DNA of 63,310 nucleotides, the filler included, from Lenisia limosa (taxonomy: Eukaryota; Protista; Breviatea): NCBI GenBank assembly GCA_001655205.1. It is 14 parts of 14 records of this genome, joined end to end, with 100 filler letters (N's around TTAATTAATTAA, not from the genome) between each part and the next. Parts side by side here need not be neighbours in the genome. Positions count along the whole stretch, not along the records: positions 59,671 to 63,310 come from LPNZ01002392.1; 13 more parts are not named here. One strand, written 5' to 3'. Below the pieces are notes generated by a model that saw only the letters and a program-made list of their open reading frames with translations, was not told the origin of the DNA and ran no database searches. A program made the translations under genes and the position numbers. Position 1 is the stretch's first letter, and every line of letters begins with the position of its first letter. This document shows, piece by piece, positions 2,946-63,285 of this stretch.

Positions 2946-5030
2946 CGTTACTTTGGTAGCTGTGGAAAAGGCTTTTGATTTGGAAGCAGTACAACTAAGC
3001 GAAGGTAATTTTACTCATTCAGAATTGACATTTATGGATGATAATTACGTAATTTTGTACCAGAAAACCAAATAAATTGTACTTTTAACTCTGCATTCAC
3101 CTACCAGCGTACCTCCAAAAATTGGTTATTAATTCCATTAACTAGATTCATGCAATAATCCTCCACACACCACAGAATATGTAGTCATTCTGGCAACTGA
3201 TGCGACAAAGAAGCCAAATACCCATCTACATCAAGATCAACTTTTAAAATAGGAACCCAGTAAAATATAGGAGCACTTACTCTTTGAATAAGGACAAACA
3301 TGTTTTTTCCAGTTCAAACCTTCCCAAAATGCACTTGCTCTGTGAACCTGTCAGCTGATACTCCGGAGATGAATCATAGTGACATCCCGCTACCTACAAA
3401 TATATATTACCTTGGGGTTTCATGTACAAAAACCTTTATGATTTACAAAAAGGTGACTACACTATTTCAACTCATCCCCTCTCAATTTTCCATAGCTTGA
3501 AAATGTATTTCATGAAAAGCGGAGATGTATATGCCTTTACCATATAATCCACACTGCTGTTAATATCACCGCATTGTTGTGAATAGGTTGTTATAACTCA
3601 GAAGTGATATGGATGTTTGGTATTTCATAAATCACATAGAAACATTATACACCTGCTAAACTAGGAGCTTACTGTGATGTAGTGGAGGTACATGATGATG
3701 AAGAAGAAAATCAGAACCACAAAGAAGGCAATAACAATGAGAACCGAAGTACTGATCAGTTTCATAAGTAGTAGTACATCCTAAAAGATGATCGCGTTGC
3801 CTGAAAATTGGCAATACGTGAAAAATACTCAAGTATTGCAAATTATAGGTGAGTCTATATCAAATCTAAGAATATAAACAATTTTAAATAAAACATCTTT
3901 ACCTTGGCAACATTCTTCCATGTGACTGATGATTTGAAGAATTCACCAAATGTTGTTGTCAATTTGAACTAATTATCGATTAATTAATCATCATACTACG
4001 ATTTCCCTGATGGAAATGGATATTCAAAATATTTAGTCACATTCATCAGAGTGAAGCCCGGCATACACTGGTTGGAGGTCCGGTGACTCTATAGGGAATT
4101 CCGCATGACGGGCAGACACCTCTGGCTTTATCCTGAAATAATAAACAAAATACGAATTTCACTTTTGGTTTCACAAAATCAATATCGTGGTTTATCGAGA
4201 ATTCAATATTTTGGAACCGAGTGTTAAGCTCTAAAGAATAATATTTACTAATTTGAAGGAGATGAATACCAGTGTTATTCATTTTCGCAATTGTGTCGCA
4301 ATAATATTTAAAACTTTGCTCAGTTAAAATCAATCAGTTCCCACCAATTCATACTTAGGAACTGTTTTGCCTAAACAAACTACCAACCTTTCCAAGATGA
4401 TTTTGTTGAGCGTCAAGGCACTCTCTTGATTGGTAAGAGTGTTGTTGATACAGCTATTTATTATATTAAAACAGCAATATTTATAGAGTATTTATTATTG
4501 AATCAGACATTTGTTGGAAGTGAAACTCTGTTCCAAAACACCAACCTGTGAGCCCATCTCATGCTGCCACCGCACAAACAAGCATCTGCAATCATGCTTT
4601 CCTCTGGCCCTTCATCCAAGCAGAACCTAATAAATGAAGAAGTAATCGATAGTTTAAAGTATCCTTATGAGCGTGGTCACTGGTATATATAATACTGTCC
4701 TCATATTTATCATATCAAGCTATATGGATCTGAATCACTATTGGAAATATAATTTTTGCTCATTAATACCCGAAGTAAATTCAAAACAAAGTTGACGTTC
4801 ATATCGAATTTCTATTATGGTTTAGAATGTGACAAGTGACAACTTTCGCCTATTATACTCTCGCCCGGTATTTGAAATATAAAACAGAAATGAATGCTGA
4901 AATATAATCATCCATACTTGAATTTTTAAAGGAATATAACTTCTTCCAAACCTGCATTCCACTTCATCGTCTTCCATTTCCACTTCCCTGACGGCAATTC
5001 GTGTAATGGTTCCGGGTTAGAGTTGTGCTT
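2946..5030 (-). CDS. RINGv (C4HC3, MARCH-type) E3 ubiquitin ligase with downstream transmembrane exons; ends uncertain
   Basis: Exons near 4950-5030, 4548-4625, 4390-4425 and 4080-4135 splice to EDDEVECRFCLDEGPEESMIADACLCGGSMRWAHRECLDAQQNHLGKDKARGVCPSCGIPY. A hydrophobic exon at ~3665-3775 reads DVLLLMKLISTSVLIVIAFFVVLIFFFIIMYLHYIT. Confidence 0.72.
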
Positions 5031-6359: not shown

Positions 6360-9300
6360 ATGAATGATCTTCAGTCTGAACCTGATCACCTTACGAAAGG
6401 GCTACAGAAGTGGTTTGGCCATGATTCCTTCCGCAAAAACCAGAAAGATGCCATTTCCGCTTATATGGAAAAGAAAGATGTCTTTGTCCTTGCACCAACT
6501 GGTGGAGGAAAGTCGCTCTGCTTCCAGCTGCCTGCGTTACTATCATCTGGAGTGACTTTAGTCATTTCACCGCTGATTGGTTAGTTAAATTCCCCTTCTT
6601 TCTCACATTTCTATCTAGCGCTCATGCAGGATCAAGTAGCAAACCTCAAGAGCAAAGGCATTAGTGCGGCTTGCCTCAATGCCAAGGCCAAGGACAGGAA
6701 GGAAATCGAAGTTTGTTGGGGAGAAGGGATTGAGTTCGTTTATGGATGTGGAGTATTCTATCATGTTCAGCTCTGTCATATGACGGTTATCTGTGACCTA
6801 TAGAACTCTCTCTGTCGGTTGCAATAATACGAGCACATGTCGATTTATACAGTATCTCAGGTTAATCAAGATTTCAGGCATTAATAAATTGAAATATCTT
6901 TTTACAGCATTAATCTATATTATATATAATATATATATATTTGACATGAACTCTAACTTTACCATACAGTAAACGGGATTACTGATTTTCCTTGGGAAAT
7001 CACATAGCAAATATGTCAAGACTTTTCCCAGTCACTGTATATTCCTCTCTGCACTAGAATACCCTGGGTGGTAAAGGGCAGAGCCAAAAAACTGACAAAA
7101 TATCGTTAATTATCGAGGATTTATCGAAAAATTCAGTCATTTTTGGAACCGAAAGTGAAGATCTAGAAGTGGAATCAATATCGGACGTCTACCAAGTCGT
7201 TTTCTGATTCCCTTTAGGATGATCTGCGCTCATCGAGGCCGTTTGCCAAGCTTGTCTATGTCACACCTGAGCTTATCTCCTCAAGTGGCTCGTTCATGTC
7301 GATCTTATATGGACTCTCAAGGTAGCTNNNNNNNNNNNNNNNNNNNNNNNNNNNNNNNNNNNNNNNNNNNNNNNNNNNNNNNNNNNNNNNNNNNNNNNNN
7401 NNNNNNNNNNNNNNNNNNNNNNNNNNNNNNGACTGAGTTTCTCGATAAATCTTCAAAAACTATTTAGTGTTAATTTTTCGAACCAAAGTCTAGGTGGAGG
7501 GCATGTTGCAGAAAAGTTGGAGGTAAATATTGTGCTGGTGGATCGATTTGTGTGTATTGGGGGACCTCATAAGCCTGTTTAATTACAACAACGGCTTTGG
7601 TCAGATACAACCTTATTTTTTATTTCTCATTGCTATATATTCACTACATTGGAATAATTAGAAAATGATGATAACTCTGTTTTCCCTGTTTTTTTTCTTC
7701 TATTTTATTCCCAAATTTATTCGATTCAGGGCCAATCTCTTGGATGGTGTGGCAGTTGACGAAGCACATTGTATTTCATCCTGGGGGCACGACTTCAGGT
7801 AACAAGGCGGTGTATATTCTTGATTCCAACAAAAACAGAGAAGTAAAAAACACAGTAAATAAACAAAAAAGAAGGCTGATAAATAGTATTTGTCTTTTTT
7901 GGACTGCTAGGGAGCTATGGTAGTAGTAGAGGATTCTCTATCCCAAGAATTTTTTTAGTTTAATGTGATTTCTTGCTATCAGTAAAGTGGATTTTGCCCG
8001 TCTTAGATTATCCTATTGGGCACAATAAAGGTCGGTAAACTATCGAAATATATTGATGCCTTTTAGATCCGCCTATCGAGCTTTAGGCGTTATCAAGACC
8101 AAGTTCCCAAGGGTTCCTATTATCGCGTTAACTGCAACTGCTACAAGAAGGTTTGATCGATATCCGTATTTCACTATAAATAGGACTCTTACTGTTTTCT
8201 CTTTTGTTCAAAAACTCGATAAAATATCGACGAATTGAAGCCATTATGATTACTGTCCAGGGTTTGTGATGACATATTGGTGTCTCTCGGAATTACAAAT
8301 GCCCGCGTCTTCAGAGCATCATTCAACAGACCAAATATCCGATATGAGGTATGTGGATTTGGTTTGGTAATAATATTAAACAATAATCCAATATCTCTTT
8401 TAAGAGTGATGTCGTGGACGGCTTCGGCCAGGTAATATAACTTTTTTTTATTTCTCATTAATATATGTGTGGAACAGATATGACGAATAGTCTGTGAGAT
8501 TTTGCAGATGATTATCAATTATTCTCCTTAGTGGCCTTTTTTTAGAAACCTCCCATCTCCCATCAGGCCTGAAACTCCCTTCATTTCCCATTTCTTTTAA
8601 TATTTATTCCTTTAGGTTCGATACAAAGATGGCATTGACAATGTGGAAGAGGACATTCTGGTTTGCGGACGGTTGTTTTGGATAAGATGGTTCATCTAAA
8701 AATGGGATGGTATTTTGTTTGTTAGAGACTCTAGCTAAAGGGATAAAAGATGTTTTTGAAATGAAAATATTTAAAACTAAGACCGATTTTTTCAAGTTTT
8801 TTATTTCTCATCTCTCTATACTACTAAGGATTCCTCTGATTCCCTAGCGAGTGATCAAGTCCATGGGTAACGACGAGGAACAGGCATGTGGCATTATCTA
8901 TTGCCATACCAGGGCGTCATGTGAGGAAATCTCGGCCTTTCTCAACTCTCGAGGTCTCAAGGCAGCTGGTGGGGAATTAAGTTTTTCCCATGAAATTTAT
9001 TACATAATGTATACTACGTATATGTTATAATCATGTTCTTTTTTCTGAGCAGTACTGGCCACGTTGTCAGATACCTCATACTTTCATTTGAAAAAAACAA
9101 ATATAATGCCCTTGTGACGCTTTAGCGTACCACAGTCAAGCAAAAGACAGAGACTATATCGTGGAATGCTGGCAGGTGAGCTCATAGTATTAATTTTTCT
9201 TGGTAAAAAAAAGTATTTTTCTCAAATTAGGCTCCTTCATCGTTATTCGTTTTTAAAAGCAGCCTAACCTGGTCAGAACAAAACGCTTCACCTTGTTTGC

Positions 9301-11227
9301 TCAACAGTTGCCTTCGGCATGGGTATCGACAGAGGTGATGTACGGTGTGTGGGAAAAAAACCCTACAGAATAGGAGGGGTGGGTGGGGGTGCTTCAGTTT
9401 CAGTTTTAAAAGAATATTATTTCTCAAAGAATTCAGCCTTTTTTGATAGGTTTTTTTATCTTTTCATACTTGCTCACCCCCTCTCTCTCTCTCTCTGTTA
9501 ATGTCACACCAGATGGTATTTCCACTCCCCGGGCCACCAGGGTTGGGGGGCAGTAACTTTTCTCATTTGTTCAGATTTGTGATCCACTATGACATCTCAA
9601 AAAGCGTTGAAGGCTATTACCAGGTTGGCGATGTAGCAGCTGTGTGTTTTGTATGTCATATTTAATTGCATATTATGATCAATCTTAGACTCAGAGGTAA
9701 GGAGAAATACACTGACTGCTCTAAGTCCTTTCAACTAACGATTAGGGCTTCCCTACTCTCCGAAAAAGACCGGTCAAATATCAATATTTAACGAGGATTT
9801 ATCGAGATATTCGGTCTTTTTTGGGACTGTAGGGAACCGCTACTAATGATAAAGCTCAATATTCGTGCGAGGACTTATTGCGGTCACTGTCTCTAAAGGA
9901 CAGTAGACAAAAACAGATATTTATGGCATGTTTAGGTCTTCATTCCGGCTGAATTTCTCGACAAATCACGGATATATTTCAAGAGGAAGTGAAGCCCTAC
10001 CTATTGTTATTCATGTTGACCCAAAAGGAAAGCGGCCGAGCTGGAAGAGACGGTCTACCTTCCCGCGCGATTCTCTACTACAGCGCTACTGATCGTGATA
10101 AGCATCTCTTCCTCATGCAGTGGGTTATAAGTGGGGCTTCCTACGGTCCGAAAATGACCGTAAAACATCGAAACTTTTCGAGGAGTTATTGATTCTGTCT
10201 TTTTGGGAGAGGGTCTCAATTAAGTTAAAAGAGAGGGAAATTATCTAGTCCTATTCTAATTCATGCGGAGATCTGTGATTTGTTTGATTTAATCATGTTC
10301 TTGAATAGGTCATTTAGCCTACATCACAAAAAACACACTTTTTTTCATTGACCCGACCGTTCACTCTAGGCAAGACGTGAAGCGCAAAAACGGTGACAAC
10401 CCTGAGAGTGAGGAAGACAAGGCATCTAGAGAGGCGTTTTACAAGGTCTGGAGAGGGCATTTGACCAGTGTGTAGCTTGTCAAGACTTGTATATGACCCA
10501 TATAGATACTATGAATATACTACCTTGTGTGGAAATTGACCAGTTTAGCTAGTTGAGATCTGTGAGCACGCAAACTGTCGCCGTGCTGGCCTGTTAGCCT
10601 ACTTTGATGAAACTGCCAACACCAACCACATTGATAAGGTGCGCAGCTTTGGTCATTGGTTCAAGCTAGGGATTCACTATAATCCTAAAAAAAAGACTGA
10701 ATTTCTCATATTCGATAAATATCGATATTCTCCAGGTCTTTTTTTTTGGACTGGAGTTTAGCCGTAGCTATCAACTTAGTAGAAATGTTGGCCTTTTTAT
10801 TTGTAATCAAACTGCATCTGTTATAATGATTCCTTTCTATTCATTTGGTTTCAGTTCAAAAAATTATAAAACCTTAAGCCTCACGCGACTGACCTGACCT
10901 TTATTTCAACTCTCGTGTGTTGCTAGCCAACAGAGTTGATTTTGGGCTTTTTTTGTCTCATTTTTTCCAAATTTACCCCCCCTCCTAGGTCAATTGCTGC
11001 GATGTGTGCACAACTCCAATGAAAGTTAGACAACTTCTCCAACGGTTTGAAAAGTGATTTCTGTGTACACATTCCTTTTTAAGCAATACTATCTTCACAT
11101 CTCATATCCCAATATACTACCACTATATGAAGATTTCTTTATTGCCCAGGTTGAACATTAAGTCGAACCAGAAAAGAGGCCCTAAGTCAAGTGTCACTGC
11201 TAGGGACCTGAAGCATCCTCAGCCAGG
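6360..11227 (+). CDS. RECQ: RecQ-family DNA helicase, about 15 exons, 3' end cut by a linker
   Basis: Motifs in order across GT-AG introns: [97 protein letters not shown], and RQC zinc cysteines ([10 protein letters not shown]...CCDVC). The first intron (6580-6618) is 39 nt. Confidence 0.95.
8385..8432 (+). repeat. Repeat family D: ~50-bp dispersed repeat
   Basis: AATCCAATATCTCT...GTGATG..GTGGACG(GCTTCG) at ~8385-8432, ~13996-14043 and ~39823-39870. Confidence 0.6.
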
Positions 11228-11639
11228 TGGGGTTTATTGAAACTAGGATCATAAAGATCCAATGGTTAACTTTACACAACACACCTATAATTCGGACTAG
11301 AGCTTCACTTTCGGTCCGGAAAGGAATCTTCCATAAATCGTCGATAAATCTTGATATTTTATAAATATATATATATATGCTGCTGCACCAAAACCGTGTC
11401 ATTAATTCAGAAACCGTGTCATNNNNNNNNNNNNNNNNNNNNNNNNNNNNNNNNNNNNNNNNNNNNTTAATTAATTAANNNNNNNNNNNNNNNNNNNNNN
11501 NNNNNNNNNNNNNNNNNNNNNNGTCAAACTTTTTCTAAAACTAGACTGGAGTGCTGGGCTTGGTTTTGTTATTTTCATCCTACCTTATACCCCCCATACT
11601 CTCTCTCATAACCTCCATATACTCCCCACCCCCTTTATA

Positions 11640-13970
11640 CCCTCACCTGTTTGACCGGTCTGACATTGAGGACTTTCTTCTTGTTGGACAGAGGGTTGGC
11701 AGCCTTCGCTCTCTTCACGTGTTTCTTCTCTCCTGAAATGTAAGATTAAATTCCTCTTCTCAATGTAATTGATTAAACACTTCCTCTTCTCTCTATGCAA
11801 TGATTAAACACTTCTTTTCTCTATTGTGTAATTGATTAAATAGACTCATATCTCTGCTGACTTGTCACCCACATACCCATCATATCTCTGATGACCTGTC
11901 TTTCCTCTTCGACTTTCCTTTGTTCCATTTCCTCCTTCTGCGAGGGGTTAAAATTGAAAGTACCTACGGCCCGAAAAAGACAGGTAAAATATTGGTACTA
12001 TCGAGGATTTATCGAAATTTGGTCGTTTTTTTGGATCATTGGGAAGCCCTGGATAGAAGTAGGTGCCAGTAATCTTCTGACAATANNNNNNNNNNNNNNN
12101 NNNNNNNNNNNNNNNNNNNNNNNNNNNNNNNNNNNNNNNNNNNNNNNNNNNNNNNNNNNNNNNNNNNNNNNNNNNNNNNNNNNNNNNNNNNNNNNNNNNN
12201 NNNNNNNNNNNNNNNNNNNNNNNNNNNNNNNNNNNNNNNNNNNNNNNNNNNNNNNNNNNNNNNCTCCATATTTGACTTAATAGACTTCATGGGGGGAAGC
12301 AGTGTGACAACTAGGTGTGTGAGTGGATTTTGGAATGAGAAAATGATTACTATAAATATCAGTTTGGACAAAGCCGTCCACACCATCAGGCTTTCCCCTC
12401 CCTTTGTTCATAGTAAGGGTCAAAATATGGCTACCTTATAGACAATAACCCCATTCTATACCAGTGACCGGGATTCTTGACCGATTTTCTCGGGGAAATC
12501 AAAGAGCAAATCGGTCAAGACTTATCCTGATCACTGTACACAATATCACCCCCCCCCCCCNNNNNNNNNNNNNNNNNNNNNNNNNNNNNNNNNNNNNNNN
12601 NNNNNNNNNNNNNNNNNNNNNNNNNNNNNNNNNNNNNNNNNNNNNNNNNNNNNNNNNNNNNNNNNNNNNNNNNNNNNNNNNNNNNCCTCGGGACCTTTTC
12701 CAGTTAATAACAGGGGGGGAAATGGAAGGGACCTTCCAGAATAGCGGGGGACATGTTGTGGGTTACTTTGGGAAATATTGACTGTATTTTGGGTTAAATT
12801 AAAGGGATGAGTAGAGATGCTAAATAATGGCAGGAAGTATCTGGCTGAAGGCGTCCTCACCATCACACGTGTTGGAAGAAAGTTGTAATATATTGGTTTA
12901 ATGGGATAATACAGAATTAAAGCGGCTTTGGGGAGAAAAGAATCAAGATAATATTTCCTGAGTTTTCTAACAGGTTACTTTTTGGGATGTTTATTATCAA
13001 TCGTGGAAATAGTATAAAAATAGGGTAATTTGAATCAACAGATTCGCTTCAACGGAATGCTTTAAGTTGAAACACGAAAATTTGCTGGAACAAATTCTAA
13101 AACAAGATAAAAAGAAGCAAAAGAAATTTTATAAAAATAAACATGATAAAAGAAACAAAGAAATTTCATAAAAAAAACCCTTACCGTCTGCAGCGATGGT
13201 AGGGTGTTGTTGCTGTGCGACTAAACTGGGGGGGGGAGTAAAACTGGAAAATTTATAAAATAAAATAAAAAAAAAATCAACTCTATTGGCTGACAACACA
13301 AAAGGGTTGATAACAAAAAAACAAAAAAAAAAGCCCAAGCCAGTCGCTTCGGCAACACCGCATCCCATCACTCCAGCGTAGCACATAAGGATCATTGATA
13401 TATTTACCCTCAACACCTAAAACGACAACAGATTGCCCAATAAAGACACTAATATTTCCCCCAAACACACACCTAAAACGGCTGCCCCCCCCCCCAAAAA
13501 AAAAGAAGAAGAAGATCCCTCTCCCTAAAAAAACCACGCACCTAAAAAGGCACTCGATTGCGGGTTTGGCATTANNNNNNNNNNNNNNNNNNNNNNNNNN
13601 NNNNNNNNNNNNNNNNNNNNNNNNNNNNNNNNNNNNNNNNNNNNNNNNNNNNAAGATGGATAATTTGGGAAATTGGGAACTTTATAAAACAAATTTATAA
13701 ATATTTAACAAAACAGCGACAAAACAAATAAAGTCTAGCGGCAGATCAGCAAATAAAACGAGACAATTTTGATTATCGCTTAATATATCTACCCCTTTTC
13801 TCCCCATCCGCCCACACACCTCAATGTACTTCTCAACTTGCTTGAAAATGGCCCTGTGGAATGAGAGGGTGATACGATTTTGTGGGTGGGAGTTGTGTGA
13901 CGGAGGTGGAGGGTTGATGGGAAGTCTCAGAGTCTATCACTTCGTAATTTGACAGAAACCATTTCACATT
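11640..13970 (-). CDS. Exons of an unidentified low-complexity protein
   Basis: AG/GT-bounded open segments at ~11648-11735 (GEKKHVKRAKAANPLSNKKKVLNVRPVKQ), ~11897-11940, 13184-13226 and ~13840-13970. No recognisable domain. Confidence 0.4.
13227..13385 (-). repeat. Repeat family B: intronic ~100-200-bp element that usually ends at a 3' splice site (representative copy)
   Basis: Core GTTGCTAGCCAACAGAGTTGATTTT...TTTCATAAATTT..TTTAC-C-tract-AG. Copies at ~10917-10987(+), 14977-15049(-), 20641-20720(-, degenerate), 38340-38473(+), 42575-42695(-), 47850-47948(-), 49915-49945(-, partial) and 53578-53645(-). Confidence 0.8.
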
Positions 13971-59670: not shown

Positions 59671-59692
59671 CAATATAACGAAACATTAAACT

Positions 59693-61048
59693 ATGGGACA
59701 TACAAGAAAACTTATTGACCTATCACTTCTCAATATTAATATAGAAAATCCTCGTTTTGAAATGGTGGGAAATCAAAGAGAAGCAATCAAGACAATGATT
59801 GATGACCAAGGCGATAAGTTAACTAAACTCGCAACTGATATTGTCGAAGAAGGCCTAAATCCGGGCGACCCAATTTTTGTAGTCAAACACGAAAAAAAAG
59901 AAGACCAATTCAATATACTTGAAGGTAACAGAAGAGTAACTGCTTTGAAATTATTGGAAAATCCCGACCTTATCCCTGAAACAAAAAAAGCCTTATTAAA
60001 TAAATTTAGAAAACTGTCCGAACAATATAGCAAGTCACCAATTGATAAAATAAACTGTGTGTTTTTTGACAGTGAGGAAGATGCCGAACATTGGATTGAA
60101 TTAAAACACACTGGACAAAATGACGGAATTGGAACTGTTAGTTGGGATGCTCAACAAAAAGCGAGATTTGATGAGCGTGTAAAGGGTACATCAAGTTATG
60201 CTTTACAAGTCATTGACTTTCTTCACAAAGAAAGTACTGTAGAAAAAGATATCAAGTCAAAATTAAAAGACGTTAAATCTTCGTCTTTACAACGTTTAGT
60301 GACAGACCCAGACTTTAGACGAGTAGCAGGTATTGAAATTAAAGATGGAAAAGTTAGAACAAAATACGAACCGAGCGAAGTTGCAAAACCTCTAACTAAG
60401 GCTGTCCGAGATTTATTGAGAAAAGATTTTACAGTAAAAGATATTTACTACAAAGATGACAGACTAAATTATTTAGAGACATTCAAAAAAACTGACCTGC
60501 CAGATAAAACACAAGAATTAGCTGGTAATTGGGAATTAATAAGCACAACACGACCAAAAAAAATTGACCCAAAAAAGGCAGAAAAGACAAAGAAAAAAAG
60601 TACTGCTCTAATATCAAAGAGAAAAACAATTATTCCAAAAAGTACCATTATTCCTATAAGTCAGCCAAGAATTAATAAAATATACCACGAATTAAAAGAT
60701 TTAGATTTATCAGACTTTGAAAATTCTGGTGCGATAACCTTTAGAGTTTTTATAGAGTTGACATTAGATGCTTATTTAGAAATATTTCCTTTGGCTTCCG
60801 TAAATGAAAATAGTAAATTAAGCCACAAATTAAGTAGTGTTGCAAAAGATTTAGAAACTAAAAAAATCCTATCAAAAGACAAGTTAAAAGGTGCTTATAC
60901 TGCGTCTACAATGAAAGATAGTATTTTTTCAATCAACACATTTAATGCCTATGTTCACAATAAAGATTTTCATCCAGAGCCAGAAAGTCTAAAAAAGAAT
61001 TGGGATAATTTAGAGATTTTTTTCGTCAAAATATGGGAGTTAATTTAA
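59693..61048 (+). CDS. 451-aa protein with N-terminal ParB/Srx-like domain and putative C-terminal HEPN-like domain
   Basis: Clean bacterial ORF. N-terminus has NPRF...GLNP...ILEGNRRVTALKLL (ParB-like); C-terminus has FRVFIELTLDAYL...INTFNAYVHN (HEPN-like, inferred). A-rich leader without a Shine-Dalgarno sequence, as in Bacteroidota. Confidence 0.8.
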   Translation: MGHTRKLIDLSLLNINIENPRFEMVGNQREAIKTMIDDQGDKLTKLATDIVEEGLNPGDPIFVVKHEKKEDQFNILEGNRRVTALKLLENPDLIPETKKALLNKFRKLSEQYSKSPIDKINCVFFDSEEDAEHWIELKHTGQNDGIGTVSWDAQQKARFDERVKGTSSYALQVIDFLHKESTVEKDIKSKLKDVKSSSLQRLVTDPDFRRVAGIEIKDGKVRTKYEPSEVAKPLTKAVRDLLRKDFTVKDIYYKDDRLNYLETFKKTDLPDKTQELAGNWELISTTRPKKIDPKKAEKTKKKSTALISKRKTIIPKSTIIPISQPRINKIYHELKDLDLSDFENSGAITFRVFIELTLDAYLEIFPLASVNENSKLSHKLSSVAKDLETKKILSKDKLKGAYTASTMKDSIFSINTFNAYVHNKDFHPEPESLKKNWDNLEIFFVKIWELI

Positions 61049-61986
61049 AAACAAATCATTATTCACCACTTCGCTATCCTGGAGGAAAAGCGAAATTATC
61101 ATATTACGTACAGCTATTAATAGATTATAATTTAATTAATGATGGCCACTATGTTGAGCCATATGCTGGCGGAGCAAGTGTTGCACTTTCACTTTTGTTC
61201 AACGAATTTGTAAGTGAGGTTCATATAAATGACTTTGACAAAAGAATTTATTCATTTTGGAATTCAATTCTTGAAAACACAGACGAGTTTATTGAAAAAA
61301 TAGAAAAAACTGAATTGAACATTCAGAATTGGAAGAGACAAAAAATTATCCAACAAAACTTTGAGAATTATTCAGAAATGGAAGTTGGTTTTTCAACGTT
61401 TTTCCTCAATCGAACAAATAGGTCTGGTATTTTAAAAGCTGGCGTAATTGGTGGAAATGCTCAAGAAGGTAAATGGAAAATGGATGCACGTTTCAATAAA
61501 GAAAATTTAATCCAGCGAATTCAAAAAATTAGTCGTTACAAAAAACGAATAAATCTATATAACGAAGATGCAGTAGATTTAACACAGAAACTTAACAAAA
61601 CACTTCCTCAACAGACACTTTTTTATTTCGACCCACCATACTACAACAAAGGAAAAGATTTATATATTAATTTCTACGAACACGCTGACCATAAACAAAT
61701 CGCTGATATTATTGCAAAACTTAAAAATAGATATTGGTTGGTTTCCTACGACAATGACAAAAATATTAGCGATTTATATTCGAACTTTCTTCAGCGGACT
61801 TATCAATTAAATTATCACGCGAACAATGCAACCAAAGGCACTGAAATAATGATTTATTCAGACAATTTAATTGTTCCCGAAATGAATAATCCAGTAGATA
61901 AAGCTGAATTGAAAGAATTTAATGAAAATGGATTGAAAGCTGATTGGATATATCAACGAAAAAATACTGTGCCCAACAATGTATAA
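61033..61986 (+). CDS. DNA adenine methyltransferase, D12/Dam class
   Basis: SPLRYPGGK, YVEPYAGGASV (motif I), NDFD and FYFDPPYY (motif IV). Overlaps the upstream ORF by 16 nt. Confidence 0.93.
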   Translation: MGVNLKTNHYSPLRYPGGKAKLSYYVQLLIDYNLINDGHYVEPYAGGASVALSLLFNEFVSEVHINDFDKRIYSFWNSILENTDEFIEKIEKTELNIQNWKRQKIIQQNFENYSEMEVGFSTFFLNRTNRSGILKAGVIGGNAQEGKWKMDARFNKENLIQRIQKISRYKKRINLYNEDAVDLTQKLNKTLPQQTLFYFDPPYYNKGKDLYINFYEHADHKQIADIIAKLKNRYWLVSYDNDKNISDLYSNFLQRTYQLNYHANNATKGTEIMIYSDNLIVPEMNNPVDKAELKEFNENGLKADWIYQRKNTVPNNV

Positions 61987-62091
61987 AAATAATAGCGGTT
62001 TAATCGCTAAAACAAAAGTAAGTAAAAATAAAAAAAGGTCAGTGTTTAACTGAAAAGTAAGGGCTTAAAATCCGCTACTATTCTTATACGT
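61971..62091 (+). other. attC-like cassette recombination site (imperfect inverted repeat), truncated by the IS110 insertion
   Basis: GCCCAAC (RYYYAAC, R''-like) at 61971-61977. Arm GTATAAAAATAATAGCGG (61981-61998) is inverted against CCGCTACTATTCTTATAC (62072-62089), 16/18 identical. The methylase stop codon lies inside the left arm. The expected GTTRRRY is replaced by the IS end. Confidence 0.6.
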
Positions 62092-62118
62092 ATTCCAAGG
62101 TAAAAAACAAGTGTTTTT

Positions 62119-63111
62119 TTAATAATTTACAGCTGCTATATTTACAAAGGGCGTACCTCTTTTTATTACTGCAAAACTTCTTGCCAATATTTTGTTTCTA
62201 ACATTGTTTAAGGCTATCATTTTGTGTTTACCTTCTTCGAGTTTTCTATGGTAGTATTTCTTAAGTTCTTGGTCTGATTGAATAGCTGATACGGCTGCCA
62301 TGCTCAATAGGGTCTTCATTTTTCTATCACCTATATAATGGCTCTGTTTTCGCCGCCTTATTGAGCTTCCTGAACTGTACTCGAACGGTGCTATACCACA
62401 ATAACTTGAGAAGGTTCTCCATGTACTGAATTTAATAAAGTTAGAGGTGTGGTAGAGCAATTGGCAGCTAAGTATAAGACCTACGCCTTTTACCGAACGC
62501 AGCAACTCATAGTTTTGCCTTAAGGTATCATCGGTCTTTACCAATGTTTTCATCTGGCTTTCTAAGGCTTCTATTTGTTTGTCTATATGTTTTATAGATC
62601 GTTCTAAAATCTTGCAGCAAACATCTGTGGATGGGCTTGACAGCAAGTGCTTGTTTTCTTTTAATGTAGATTTTAACCCACTTCGATCTCTAACCAATTG
62701 GTCTCTTAATGAGAGTATTCTTCCCAGTTCTTGAAAGATCTGTGGTTTCATATGACTTGGCTGAAGCTCTTCTCTATACATCCATCCGAACCTGGCTATC
62801 ATATAAGAGTCTAGCTTGTCTGTCTTCTCTCTTGTAAGACCTGTACTGCGCTTTATGCGCATAGGACTTTCTTCTACATAACAAACTCCACTTTCTGATA
62901 AAAAAACAGATAGCTTTAGTGAGTAATTGCCCGTATTTTCGAAACATAAAAAATACGAATCACTGCCAACTTGGTGATTTGCCCATTTAAGGAGTTTTGA
63001 ATAACCTGCTCTATCATTGGTAAATACAGCATGATGCTCGCTTTGGTATGCTGTTGCATCTATGGTTTTCTTGGATACATCTATCCCGATTACATCTCTA
63101 ACATTTTTCAT
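62119..63111 (-). CDS. IS110-family DEDD recombinase/transposase
   Basis: VIGIDVSK (D), CFENTG (E), KTDKLDS (D..D), and the Tnp domain GVG...YCGIAPFEYSSG with the catalytic Ser. 330 aa. Confidence 0.95.
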   Translation of the reverse strand: MKNVRDVIGIDVSKKTIDATAYQSEHHAVFTNDRAGYSKLLKWANHQVGSDSYFLCFENTGNYSLKLSVFLSESGVCYVEESPMRIKRSTGLTREKTDKLDSYMIARFGWMYREELQPSHMKPQIFQELGRILSLRDQLVRDRSGLKSTLKENKHLLSSPSTDVCCKILERSIKHIDKQIEALESQMKTLVKTDDTLRQNYELLRSVKGVGLILSCQLLYHTSNFIKFSTWRTFSSYCGIAPFEYSSGSSIRRRKQSHYIGDRKMKTLLSMAAVSAIQSDQELKKYYHRKLEEGKHKMIALNNVRNKILARSFAVIKRGTPFVNIAAVNY

Positions 63112-63129
63112 ATATTTAAAAAAATTATC

Positions 63130-63285
63130 ATTAATGATGTTTTGTAACTATTTCCTTTAATGAGCCAATAGGGCTAGGTATTCCAATTAGTTCTTCAAAA
63201 CATCCTACAAGAGACTGAGAGGACTATTACGTGTAATGGATATTATCTAAAGACCGTTCGAGTTCTCCTCTCTTCTCTTGTTAAA
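63130..63285 (-). ncRNA. Putative IS110 bridge RNA (target-binding loop 63208-63280, donor-binding loop 63136-63204)
   Basis: Two stem/internal-loop/hairpin units. One is GATGTTTTG..AACTA[ATTGGAATACCT]AGCC-CTATT-GGCT[CATTAAAGGAAA]TAGTT..CAAAACATC; the other is closed by CAAGAGA/TCTCTTG and AGAGGA/TCCTCT. Loop segments match the IS end and the flanking DNA. Confidence 0.75.

Follow-up and report, generated by a model that had tools for sequence, protein, structure and literature searches.

The question raised by the last part of this stretch of DNA is whether two adjacent genes that end in a long inverted repeat form a mobile gene cassette, and, if so, to what kind of system this cassette belongs. 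The stretch analyzed (the window; 63,310 nucleotides (nt) from assembly GCA_001655205.1 of Lenisia limosa, filler included) closes with a 3640-nt piece (59671-63310; LPNZ01002392.1), which contains three genes, that is, two open reading frames (ORFs) on the + strand and one on the - strand. A first-pass annotation had read the first two ORFs as a module packaged like an integron gene cassette in a Bacteroidota-like contig. The present analysis supports this reading and extends it: with a probability of about 0.85, positions 59671-62089 and 63306-63310 represent a single mobile cassette of the PD-Lambda-5 anti-phage system, which belongs to an integron-like system of the Bacteroidota, and whose attC-like site has been split by an insertion sequence (IS) of the IS110 family. 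That annotation had mentioned neither the IS, which contains the third ORF, nor the identity of the module as PD-Lambda-5, nor that the associated integrase is not a canonical IntI.

The site begins with an R'' box region (TGTGCCCAAC; 61968-61977, + strand), whose core GCCCAAC (61971-61977) fits RYYYAAC, and is followed by a 3-nt spacer (AAT) and then by the left arm of an imperfect inverted repeat. The arms, L'' (61981-62001, + strand) and L' (62069-62089, + strand), are 21 nt long each and are complementary at 18 of 21 positions (86%) across 67 nt, close to the 16/18 and the center of ~70 nt that had been noted at first. On the - strand, all 14 of the arm positions closest to the IS pair if G.T is counted. 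As DNA, the region is more stable when folded than shuffled sequences, on the + strand (z -2.6) as well as on the - strand (z -3.7). The central part (62002-62068) is variable, and the length of the whole site ranges from 58 to ~190 nt across the family, with conserved ends. The TAA of the second ORF (61984-61986) lies within the left arm, preceded by the RYYYAAC box, as had been claimed. The L' arm ends at the junction with the IS, and the rest of the L'-R' spacer lies beyond it (GGAGA; 63306-63310, + strand), as in the left flank of the IS copies, with the R' box (CCGTT...) located outside the piece. The IS splits the site between the right arm and R', which is why the piece shows no GTT partner. 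The complete layout is the R'' box GCCCAAC, the 3-nt spacer, a long imperfect hairpin, a spacer of 5-6 nt, and an R' box CGTT....

Copies of this site, at 75-90% identity, occur in unrelated genomes, that is, in the locus L015 (positions 4710-4826; handles of this kind designate the loci retrieved) and in replicons of Flammeovirga and Persicobacter. The copy at L015:4701-4825 (Hyunsoonleella) is uninterrupted and 90% identical, and follows an unrelated ORF of 697 aa that also ends in ...AAC AAT GTA TAA. It carries a GTTRRRY partner, GTTAGGC, and the repeat is multi-copy, rather than a single-copy repeat without such a partner, which the annotation had named as evidence against itself. The final codons of the second ORF fall within the site, which donates the last three codons and the stop (AAC AAT GTA TAA, or NNV*) to unrelated ORFs (window 61975-61986; L015:4814-4825). 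Large secondary replicons of the Cytophagales also carry copies, at 85% identity in L092:14806-14928 (Flammeovirga kamogawensis p1) and 76% in Persicobacter psychrovividus (NZ_AP025294.1); neither a dense array nor an integrase was found within 20 kb of the site on plasmid p1. The Rfam search of the window and of L053 returned nothing relevant, and the attC-like site corresponds to no described RNA family, while a search of a phage collection found neither the cassette nor the site.

The limits of the cassette can be read from its relatives. A scan of metagenomes with the first ORF recovered 38 loci, one of which (L053) is 99.65% identical to window positions 59671-61979, and contains, directly upstream of the first base of the piece, another attC-like site (3485-3608) that ends in ...AACGTTGGGCA. 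This upstream sequence indicates that the cassette begins with GTTGGGCACA, the exact reverse complement of TGTGCCCAAC at 61968-61977. Positions 3606-3635 of L053 comprise GTTGGGCA followed by the first 22 nt of the piece, a junction shared by L054, L055, and L071; the piece begins 8 nt past the G of the upstream R' box, and GTTGGGCA is therefore absent from it. The start GTTGGGCACA, which had been predicted from two nucleotides, is present in L053, L054, L055, and L060. The 5' leader of the cassette (59671-59692, + strand) places 22 nt ahead of the ATG at 59693, the length reported in the first pass.

In integrons, the crossover takes place at the G|TT of the R' box, and the first bases of a cassette are complementary to its own R'' box, not to that of the adjoining site. 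The same signature is found here, and the window cassette, as completed by L053, matches its own R'' at 10 of 10 positions. More widely, the 7 nt after the GTT of the upstream site were compared with the 7 nt before the AAC of the next site in 42 adjacent pairs, and were reverse complementary at all seven positions in 20 pairs and at six in another nine (29/42 at at least 6/7). Random pairs, by comparison, matched at a mean of 2.2 of 7 positions (0.9% perfect), and no perfect match was found between the R' and R'' of the same standing site (0/73). The cassette is also found in different company: its upstream neighbors differ among L053, L054/L071, L055, and L056 (95-96% protein identity in the latter three cases), and are different again for a 78% version in L063. 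Homology among the copies starts at GTT in each case, and different cassettes follow the R' boxes in L054, L058, L060, L061, and L063. In L053, the homology to the window ends at 61979, and the sequence continues (L053:5915-6000) with GCCCAAT AAC TAA and then with unrelated DNA, where the genes are on the other strand; this site has been lost, either at the end of the array or through a deletion.

The cargo consists of two genes that overlap by 16 nt. ORF1 (59693-61048, + strand; 451 aa) corresponds to PD-Lambda-5 gene A, with a match to the PADLOC profile PD-Lambda-5_A (E 5e-164) that covers residues 5-449; it matches no family in Pfam, and its N-terminus is weakly ParB-like (TIGR00180, E 2.7e-4, under the cut-off of the model). 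ORF2 (61033-61986, + strand; 317 aa) corresponds to gene B (PD-Lambda-5_B, E 5.6e-125), a D12/Dam-type N6-adenine DNA methyltransferase (PF02086, E 1.8e-20). With a ParB-like A adjacent to a methyltransferase B, and both profiles matched over nearly their full length, the module is the known PD-Lambda-5 anti-phage system, with a predicted role in defense.

Some relatives of the cassette depart from this arrangement. Those of ~80% identity (L061:9372-9995, L060, and L057:125-763) have an extra gene of 207-212 aa located 5' of PD-Lambda-5 A, with the same GTTGGGCACA start; this gene matched no family, and may be either a third component or a separate passenger. In L056, the usual site is missing after GTGCCC, and the PD-Lambda-5 cassette and its neighbors are parted by a different direct repeat of ~220 nt that ends in ...GGAAGTTG (593-815, 1550-1773, and 4064-4286), which may represent a second class of site. 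On the long contigs L059 and L080 (12280-12330 in both), only the R''-L'' half of the site is present (…AAAGTTTATAAGTAATAG), with no partner arm, and these relatives look like decayed cassettes outside arrays.

The family to which the site belongs was characterized by scanning one genome per species with the recombinase of the IS, which yielded 52 loci, nearly all from the Flavobacteriaceae, several of them 1.2-kb contigs that contain only the IS. In ten uninterrupted elements aligned as seed sites, AACA is invariant at one end and CGTT at the other, the centers are highly variable, and two of the elements are only 58-59 nt long. The family shows imperfect inverted repeats of the attC type (R''/R' and L''/L', bounded by AAC...GTT), in which many R' boxes fit GTTRRRY, and others differ from it (GTTGGCA, GTTGTGN). 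Folded as a consensus, the strand complementary to the ORFs forms an R helix of 5 bp (YAACG/TGTTR), an asymmetric internal loop, and an L helix of 16 bp without a bulge. Compensatory changes are found in 12 of the 21 pairs, and three G.T pairs, which would be A.C mismatches on the coding strand, are invariant. The L helix is uninterrupted over 16 bp and the 14-nt arms are gapless, with 14/14 pairs in many sites, so that extrahelical bases are lacking. This absence and the 3-nt spacer on the R'' side, from which the annotation had deduced a non-canonical class of attC, hold across the whole class.

Sites were also sought with a scripted scanner, which required AACG, arms of 14 nt with at least 12 pairs, and TGTT, after the removal of the IS in silico and with shuffled controls. 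An earlier version, which required only AAC and GTT, had performed no better than the shuffles (191 matches vs. ~145), and the criteria were then tightened. The final version found 45 sites in the orientation of the IS, in comparison with two on the opposite strand and ~11 in the shuffles. In the locus maps, one or two ORFs are followed by a site within 10-25 nt, with up to four repeats per 7-kb locus, and all the ORFs of the arrays are on the strand opposite the IS; such co-oriented arrays are found in L031 (four sites), L019, L017, L015, L013, L027, L054, and L058. In 26 of 32 sites, the more stable fold is that of the bottom strand (p 3e-5). Among the sites picked by the position of the IS alone, 18 of 22 have a partner arm with at least 12 of 14 pairs, followed by NNTGTT or a near variant in 17 of these 18. 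The arm sequences of these sites differ widely from one another, and the pairing is not a product of the choice of sites, because those picked without regard to it also pair.

The + strand ORFs beside these arrays include further IS110 copies, a Mu-type transposase, an AraC regulator, and a Bacteroidetes-type integrase, with no relative of IntI among them. The latter integrase (Arm-DNA-bind_5, SAM_5, Phage_integrase) is located ~180 nt past the site in L005. A tblastn search of all the loci with the IntI1 of plasmid R100 recovered two relatives of this protein, in L061:8385-9248 (31% identity, E 1e-33; gene 7884-9263) and in L017:3434-4165 (Flagellimonas okinawensis; 32%, E 3e-31). Both are on the strand of the cassettes and directly 5' of the first of these. 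In L061, the window's cassette start (...AAACGTTGGGCACAATAT...) is found ~75 nt past the stop of the recombinase gene, with the extra 207-aa gene before the PD-Lambda-5 pair, while in L017, ...AAGTTGTAGTGC, ~140 nt past the stop, is the reverse complement of the R'' of that cassette (GCACTACAAC). The third locus is a 15.4-kb ParA/Rep plasmid of Chondrinema litorale (L094, NZ_CP111070.1), in which positions 6870-12140 comprise, in this order, the integrase, GTTAGCTGC, a cassette with a GNAT gene, a site interrupted by a group II intron (ltrA) in antisense orientation, a cassette with sigma-70 and SDR genes, and a 44-nt site; this plasmid also bears an IS110-family transposase, ParA, and Rep. 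The GTT of the first cassette lies 60-140 nt past the integrase stop in all three loci, at which no conserved attI motif or promoter was established. In the relatives, the sites thus recur periodically among co-oriented ORFs, and a tyrosine recombinase is linked to them, in agreement with two of the checks that the first-pass annotation had proposed, and the arrays, the complementary boundaries, and the linked recombinase together support its suggestion of an overlooked cassette-shuffling system.

The recombinase family is large, with a 371-aa form in the Flavobacteriaceae (Flagellimonas, Tenacibaculum, Polaribacter, Mariniflexile, Cellulophaga, and others) and a 455-aa form in the Cyclobacteriaceae, and appears in the databases as XerD, 'tyrosine-type recombinase/integrase', or 'tyrosine recombinase/integron integrase'. 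Its best NCBIfam model is XerA/integron integrase, and it scores higher with TIGR02249 than with the XerC or XerD models. The closest solved structure in Foldseek is VchIntIA bound to attC (2A3V, E 4e-18), while archaeal XerA and 2A3V are roughly tied in VIA-align (Z about 21-22 and 20, respectively). The N-terminal extension is predicted (pLDDT, the confidence score of the model, ~85) to form a beta-beta-alpha-beta-beta-alpha unit, present once in the 371-aa form and twice in the 455-aa form. Outside the recombinases, it matches best, in both models, the domains at the N-termini of T4 UvsW and archaeal XPB (Z 6.8-7.4, root-mean-square deviation 2.0-2.4, ~60 residues), with a sub-threshold match to Pfam HARP (E 4.6e-4) and a weak one to the HARP domain of SMARCAL1 (4O66, E 0.23); a protein atlas returned only unnamed Bacteroidota clusters. 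The Z values lie in a range that the tool calls common, and this likeness is best treated as a lead rather than a finding. Domains of the UvsW/XPB/HARP type bind DNA that is branched or forms junctions, a property that would fit a hairpin as substrate.

The recombinase would cut the G|TT of the folded bottom strand, the cassettes would be excised as circles, and these would be inserted at an attI-like site by the 3' end of the recombinase's own gene. The choice of strand and the recognition of the hairpin may rest, in the absence of the IntI-specific domain, by which extrahelical bases are read, on the conserved G.T wobbles and on the N-terminal UvsW/XPB/HARP-like domain.

A number of points weigh against this account. 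The piece itself contains no array and, as the annotation had already stated, no integrase, so that the link depends on relatives and on L053, which is probably of the same species; both recombination and the use of a single-stranded bottom strand are deduced from the sequences, and the sites were detected with a home-made scanner. In the boundary test, 13 of the 42 adjacent pairs fail to match, and although several of these are taken to be false positives of the scanner, at sites that fall in coding sequence, a type I restriction-modification cassette in L053 is a real exception (3/7). Every aligned member of the recombinase family (L061, L017, and seven database homologues) has a gap of 31 aa opposite IntI1 196-226, that is, lacks the IntI-specific domain, and TIGR02249 matches these proteins in two stretches that skip model positions ~185-240, with 193-217 bits against a cut-off of 265. 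In L061 (9120-9263), moreover, VPVAIGN stands where the relatives have the catalytic IY, so that the catalytic tyrosine is lost and this recombinase is probably inactive; this is not a read error, because the identical protein occurs in 11 database sequences.

Some of these points would also suit a Xer-like recombinase that shuffles the cassettes on duplex sites, as in the pdif modules of Acinetobacter, with an incidental palindrome and no involvement of the hairpins. The missing IntI-specific domain would be expected of such an enzyme, and the core of the protein matches archaeal XerA as well as it does IntI (VIA-align Z 21.9 vs. 19.7; NCBIfam, as above). Yet R'' and R' are 58-190 nt apart, and folding of the hairpin is needed to bring them together; covariation is seen in the stems (12 compensatory pairs), and the conserved G.T pairs allow only one strand to fold well. 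The pdif modules, in addition, alternate in the orientation of their sites, whereas the sites here are co-oriented, and this alternative is considered improbable.

The element that splits the site is ~1216 bp long (62090-63305, - strand; ends ±2 nt), as delimited by the IS-only contigs L008, L018, and L024 and by the blast end points. It follows the L' arm and precedes the L'-R' spacer, runs in the opposite direction to the cassette, and reads TTTACTTTGA...CTTGGAATAC in its own orientation. It encodes a DEDD recombinase of 330 aa (62119-63111, - strand), which matches the 'IS110 family RNA-guided transposase' model (NF033542) at 166.6 bits (cut-off 140) and carries the two IS110 domains, PF01548 (DEDD; E 2.7e-20) and PF02371 (Transposase_20; E 6.6e-19). 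Nearly every complete copy is in the same place and orientation: a left flank made up of ...YAACGG and a further 3-5 nt precedes the IS, and a G followed by an arm of the palindrome comes after it. The flank reads ...YAACGGTCTCC up to the IS, and the far end of the palindrome is ...NNTGTT. This fixed position is shared by Tenacibaculum, Flagellimonas, Lutibacter, Seonamhaeicola, Hyunsoonleella, and others. Two loci in the genome of Tenacibaculum sp. A30 (L005 and L007:2806-4426) have a partial copy of 404 nt directly 5' of a complete one.

The 194 nt located 5' of the recombinase gene (63112-63305, - strand) fold as RNA at -43.7 kcal/mol (z -3.2), into two stem-loops with large internal loops, and matched no family in Rfam. 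Loop 1 holds AACGGUCU, which is identical to the left flank of the target (R' box and spacer), and changes along with this flank, where the target is AACGGG in L013, AACGAG in L020, and AACGGTTTT in L019; in the same three loci, the AACGGTCT loop covaries with the target flank. Loop 2 holds UUGGAAUAC, which is the right end of the IS, as well as UAAAGGA, which is reverse complementary to the left junction. The arrangement is that described for the bridge or seeker RNAs of IS110 elements (PMC11208160, PMC11187229), and the region is a putative guide RNA of this type. The element would have entered between the right arm and the R' spacer under the direction of its own guide RNA, and, as the insertion parts R' from the rest of the site, the cassette is expected to be fixed in place, that is, the IS probably immobilizes it. 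The repeat is not part of the IS, because uninterrupted copies exist without it and because the repeat lies beyond its ends, and the IS is best understood as a later arrival rather than as the source of the repeat.

Other elements occupy the sites as well. Group II introns are inserted within them in L057 and in L094, in orientations that differ between the two. The group II intron RNA domains of L057 (3150-3320, 6607-6724, and 12-87; RF01999, 106 bits; RF00029, 67 bits) start right past the L' arm of the PD-Lambda-5 cassette site, a few nt from the position of the IS in the window.

The preference of the IS for this position bears on whether the palindromes may be no more than repetitive extragenic palindromic (REP) sequences or miniature inverted-repeat transposable elements (MITEs), which would spread alone, serve as landing pads for IS110, and leave the genes between them immobile. 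The elements are indeed repeated and palindromic, and REP sequences are among the known targets of IS110/IS1111 elements (PMC11187229). It is across the intervening gene, however, and not across the element, that the flanks beyond AAC and GTT are complementary; the same cassette is found with different neighbors, with the break at GTT, and arrays start beside an IntI-like recombinase in three loci. This explanation is very unlikely. Less likely still is that the repeat acts as a terminator, either rho-independent or bidirectional, for the methylase and transposase genes, which converge on its stable hairpin: no run of T follows the stem on the + strand, on which no terminator was called for the repeat of the window, the conserved wobbles would be A.C mismatches in the RNA of the coding strand, and the conserved AAC and GTT boxes lie 3-6 nt outside the stem, while the convergent arrangement is itself secondary to the arrival of the IS. 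A repeat belonging to the IS, as a sub-terminal repeat or the 3' seeker RNA of an IS1111-type element, is refuted by the ends of the element and by the copies that lack it. The repeat does abut the transposase gene at its 3' end, the place of the guide RNA in IS1111-type elements (PMC11187229), but the IS-only contigs stop 30 nt past the stop codon of the recombinase, at ...CTTGGAATACG, uninterrupted repeats occur without an IS, and the long non-coding region is 5' of the gene, as in the IS110 type.

With the interpretation as an integron-like cassette retained, the criteria for integrons were taken in the sense of Cury 2016 and Messier & Roy 2001, and the system looks like a non-canonical class; it is not filed as a canonical integron because two of the defining features examined, the additional domain of IntI and the extrahelical bases, are lacking. 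The evidence leans, by a small measure, toward a broader proposal, that of a distinct and widespread class of integrons in the Flavobacteriaceae and Cytophagales. Such a class would combine an IntI-related integrase, in which the IntI-specific domain was either lost or never present and one or two N-terminal UvsW/XPB/HARP-like domains bind DNA in a structure-specific manner, with attC hairpins devoid of extrahelical bases, in which G.T wobbles mark the recombinogenic strand, and would include defense cargo and its own attC parasites (a bridge-RNA element of the IS110 type and group II introns). The 'xerD'-tet(X3) unit found on Acinetobacter plasmids may likewise have arisen from this class.

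In that unit (L093:5052-7240; plasmid NZ_CP041297.1 of Acinetobacter indicus), the 'xerD' fragment beside tet(X3) is a truncated member of the array-adjacent recombinase family, with 65% identity to Belliella P0040 over residues 213-455 and 58% to the array-adjacent integrase of Flagellimonas. The tet(X3) gene occupies the position of a first cassette, with CTTGTTATGTGCC before it and the R''-like GGCTACTAAC after it; no intact hairpin was found downstream (fold z +0.26). It is possible that the unit derives from an integron-like array of the Bacteroidota.

Integrons are one of the main ways in which bacteria capture genes, and the Bacteroidota have been regarded as having almost none. Reports from the Bacteroidetes are confined to In0 elements and a single complete integron, in Salinibacter (PMC9024848), a 2024 preprint from the integron field lists the Bacteroidota among the clades previously found to be without integrons, and a cluster of attC sites lacking an integrase (CALIN), with two methyltransferase genes, is on record for a Polaribacter phage (PMC9892861). 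The criterion applied in integron surveys excludes an integrase that lacks the IntI-specific domain, which would explain this gap. No description of the present class was found in the literature search, which lay outside most subscription journals, and an earlier description is possible. An integron-like system with a different recognition module would show which parts of the IntI/attC mechanism are essential, and would point to a large unexplored pool of cassettes in marine Bacteroidota, defense systems such as the PD-Lambda-5 pair included. It would also provide a natural example of a folded recombination site as the programmed target of an IS110-type guide RNA, and a hypothesis, open to test, on where the tyrosine recombinase fragment that accompanies the tigecycline-resistance gene tet(X3) came from.

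In comparison with known systems, the closest likeness is to classical integrons, including the sedentary chromosomal ones, which share the arrays of co-oriented ORFs, in which the leaders are very short and an imperfect palindrome, variable in length, comes after each ORF; the R'' xxxxAAC and R' GTTxxxx boxes; the G|TT crossover, with the start of each cassette complementary to the R'' of that same cassette; an attI-like junction beside a tyrosine recombinase, here 31% identical to IntI1 and VchIntIA; and defense systems as cassettes (bioRxiv 10.1101/2024.07.02.601686). Unlike theirs, the recombinase described here lacks the IntI-specific domain of ~31 aa (IntI1 196-226), has an extra N-terminal domain of 95-170 aa, and is co-oriented with the cassettes, with the attI-like site at its 3' end. 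The sites differ in the absence of extrahelical bases, the L helix of at least 16 bp, the invariant G.T wobbles, and the spacers of 3 vs. 5-6 nt, and the hosts, Flavobacteriaceae and Cytophagales, belong to a phylum listed as being without integrons. The pdif/Re27 modules of Acinetobacter plasmids (XerC/XerD) are likewise discrete gene modules between sites for a Xer-type tyrosine recombinase without the IntI domain, but pdif is a 28-bp duplex of alternating orientation, with no hairpin, no AAC/GTT boxes, and no dedicated integrase by an attI.

The parasites of the sites have counterparts of their own. The known elements that target attC belong to the IS1111 group, in which the RNA is located downstream of the gene (PMC11187229). 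The IS1111-attC elements (ISPa21, ISKpn4, and ISPst6) resemble the present IS as DEDD-recombinase elements in a fixed position and orientation at one end of attC, with a target set by an RNA that the IS encodes (PMC11187229), whereas the non-coding region here is 5' of the gene, as in the IS110 type, no sub-terminal inverted repeats were seen, and both the hosts and the class of attC differ. Group IIC-attC introns are known from classical integrons (PMC3001079) and resemble the group II introns inserted in the attC-like sites of L057 and L094, but the latter are recognized at the level of group II, and differ in orientation between the two loci. The cargo, finally, agrees with PD-Lambda-5 as defined in PADLOC, in that each gene matches its profile, A or B, over nearly the whole length; no departure from this system is seen in the window, while L057, L060, and L061 add the gene of 207-212 aa to the cassette.

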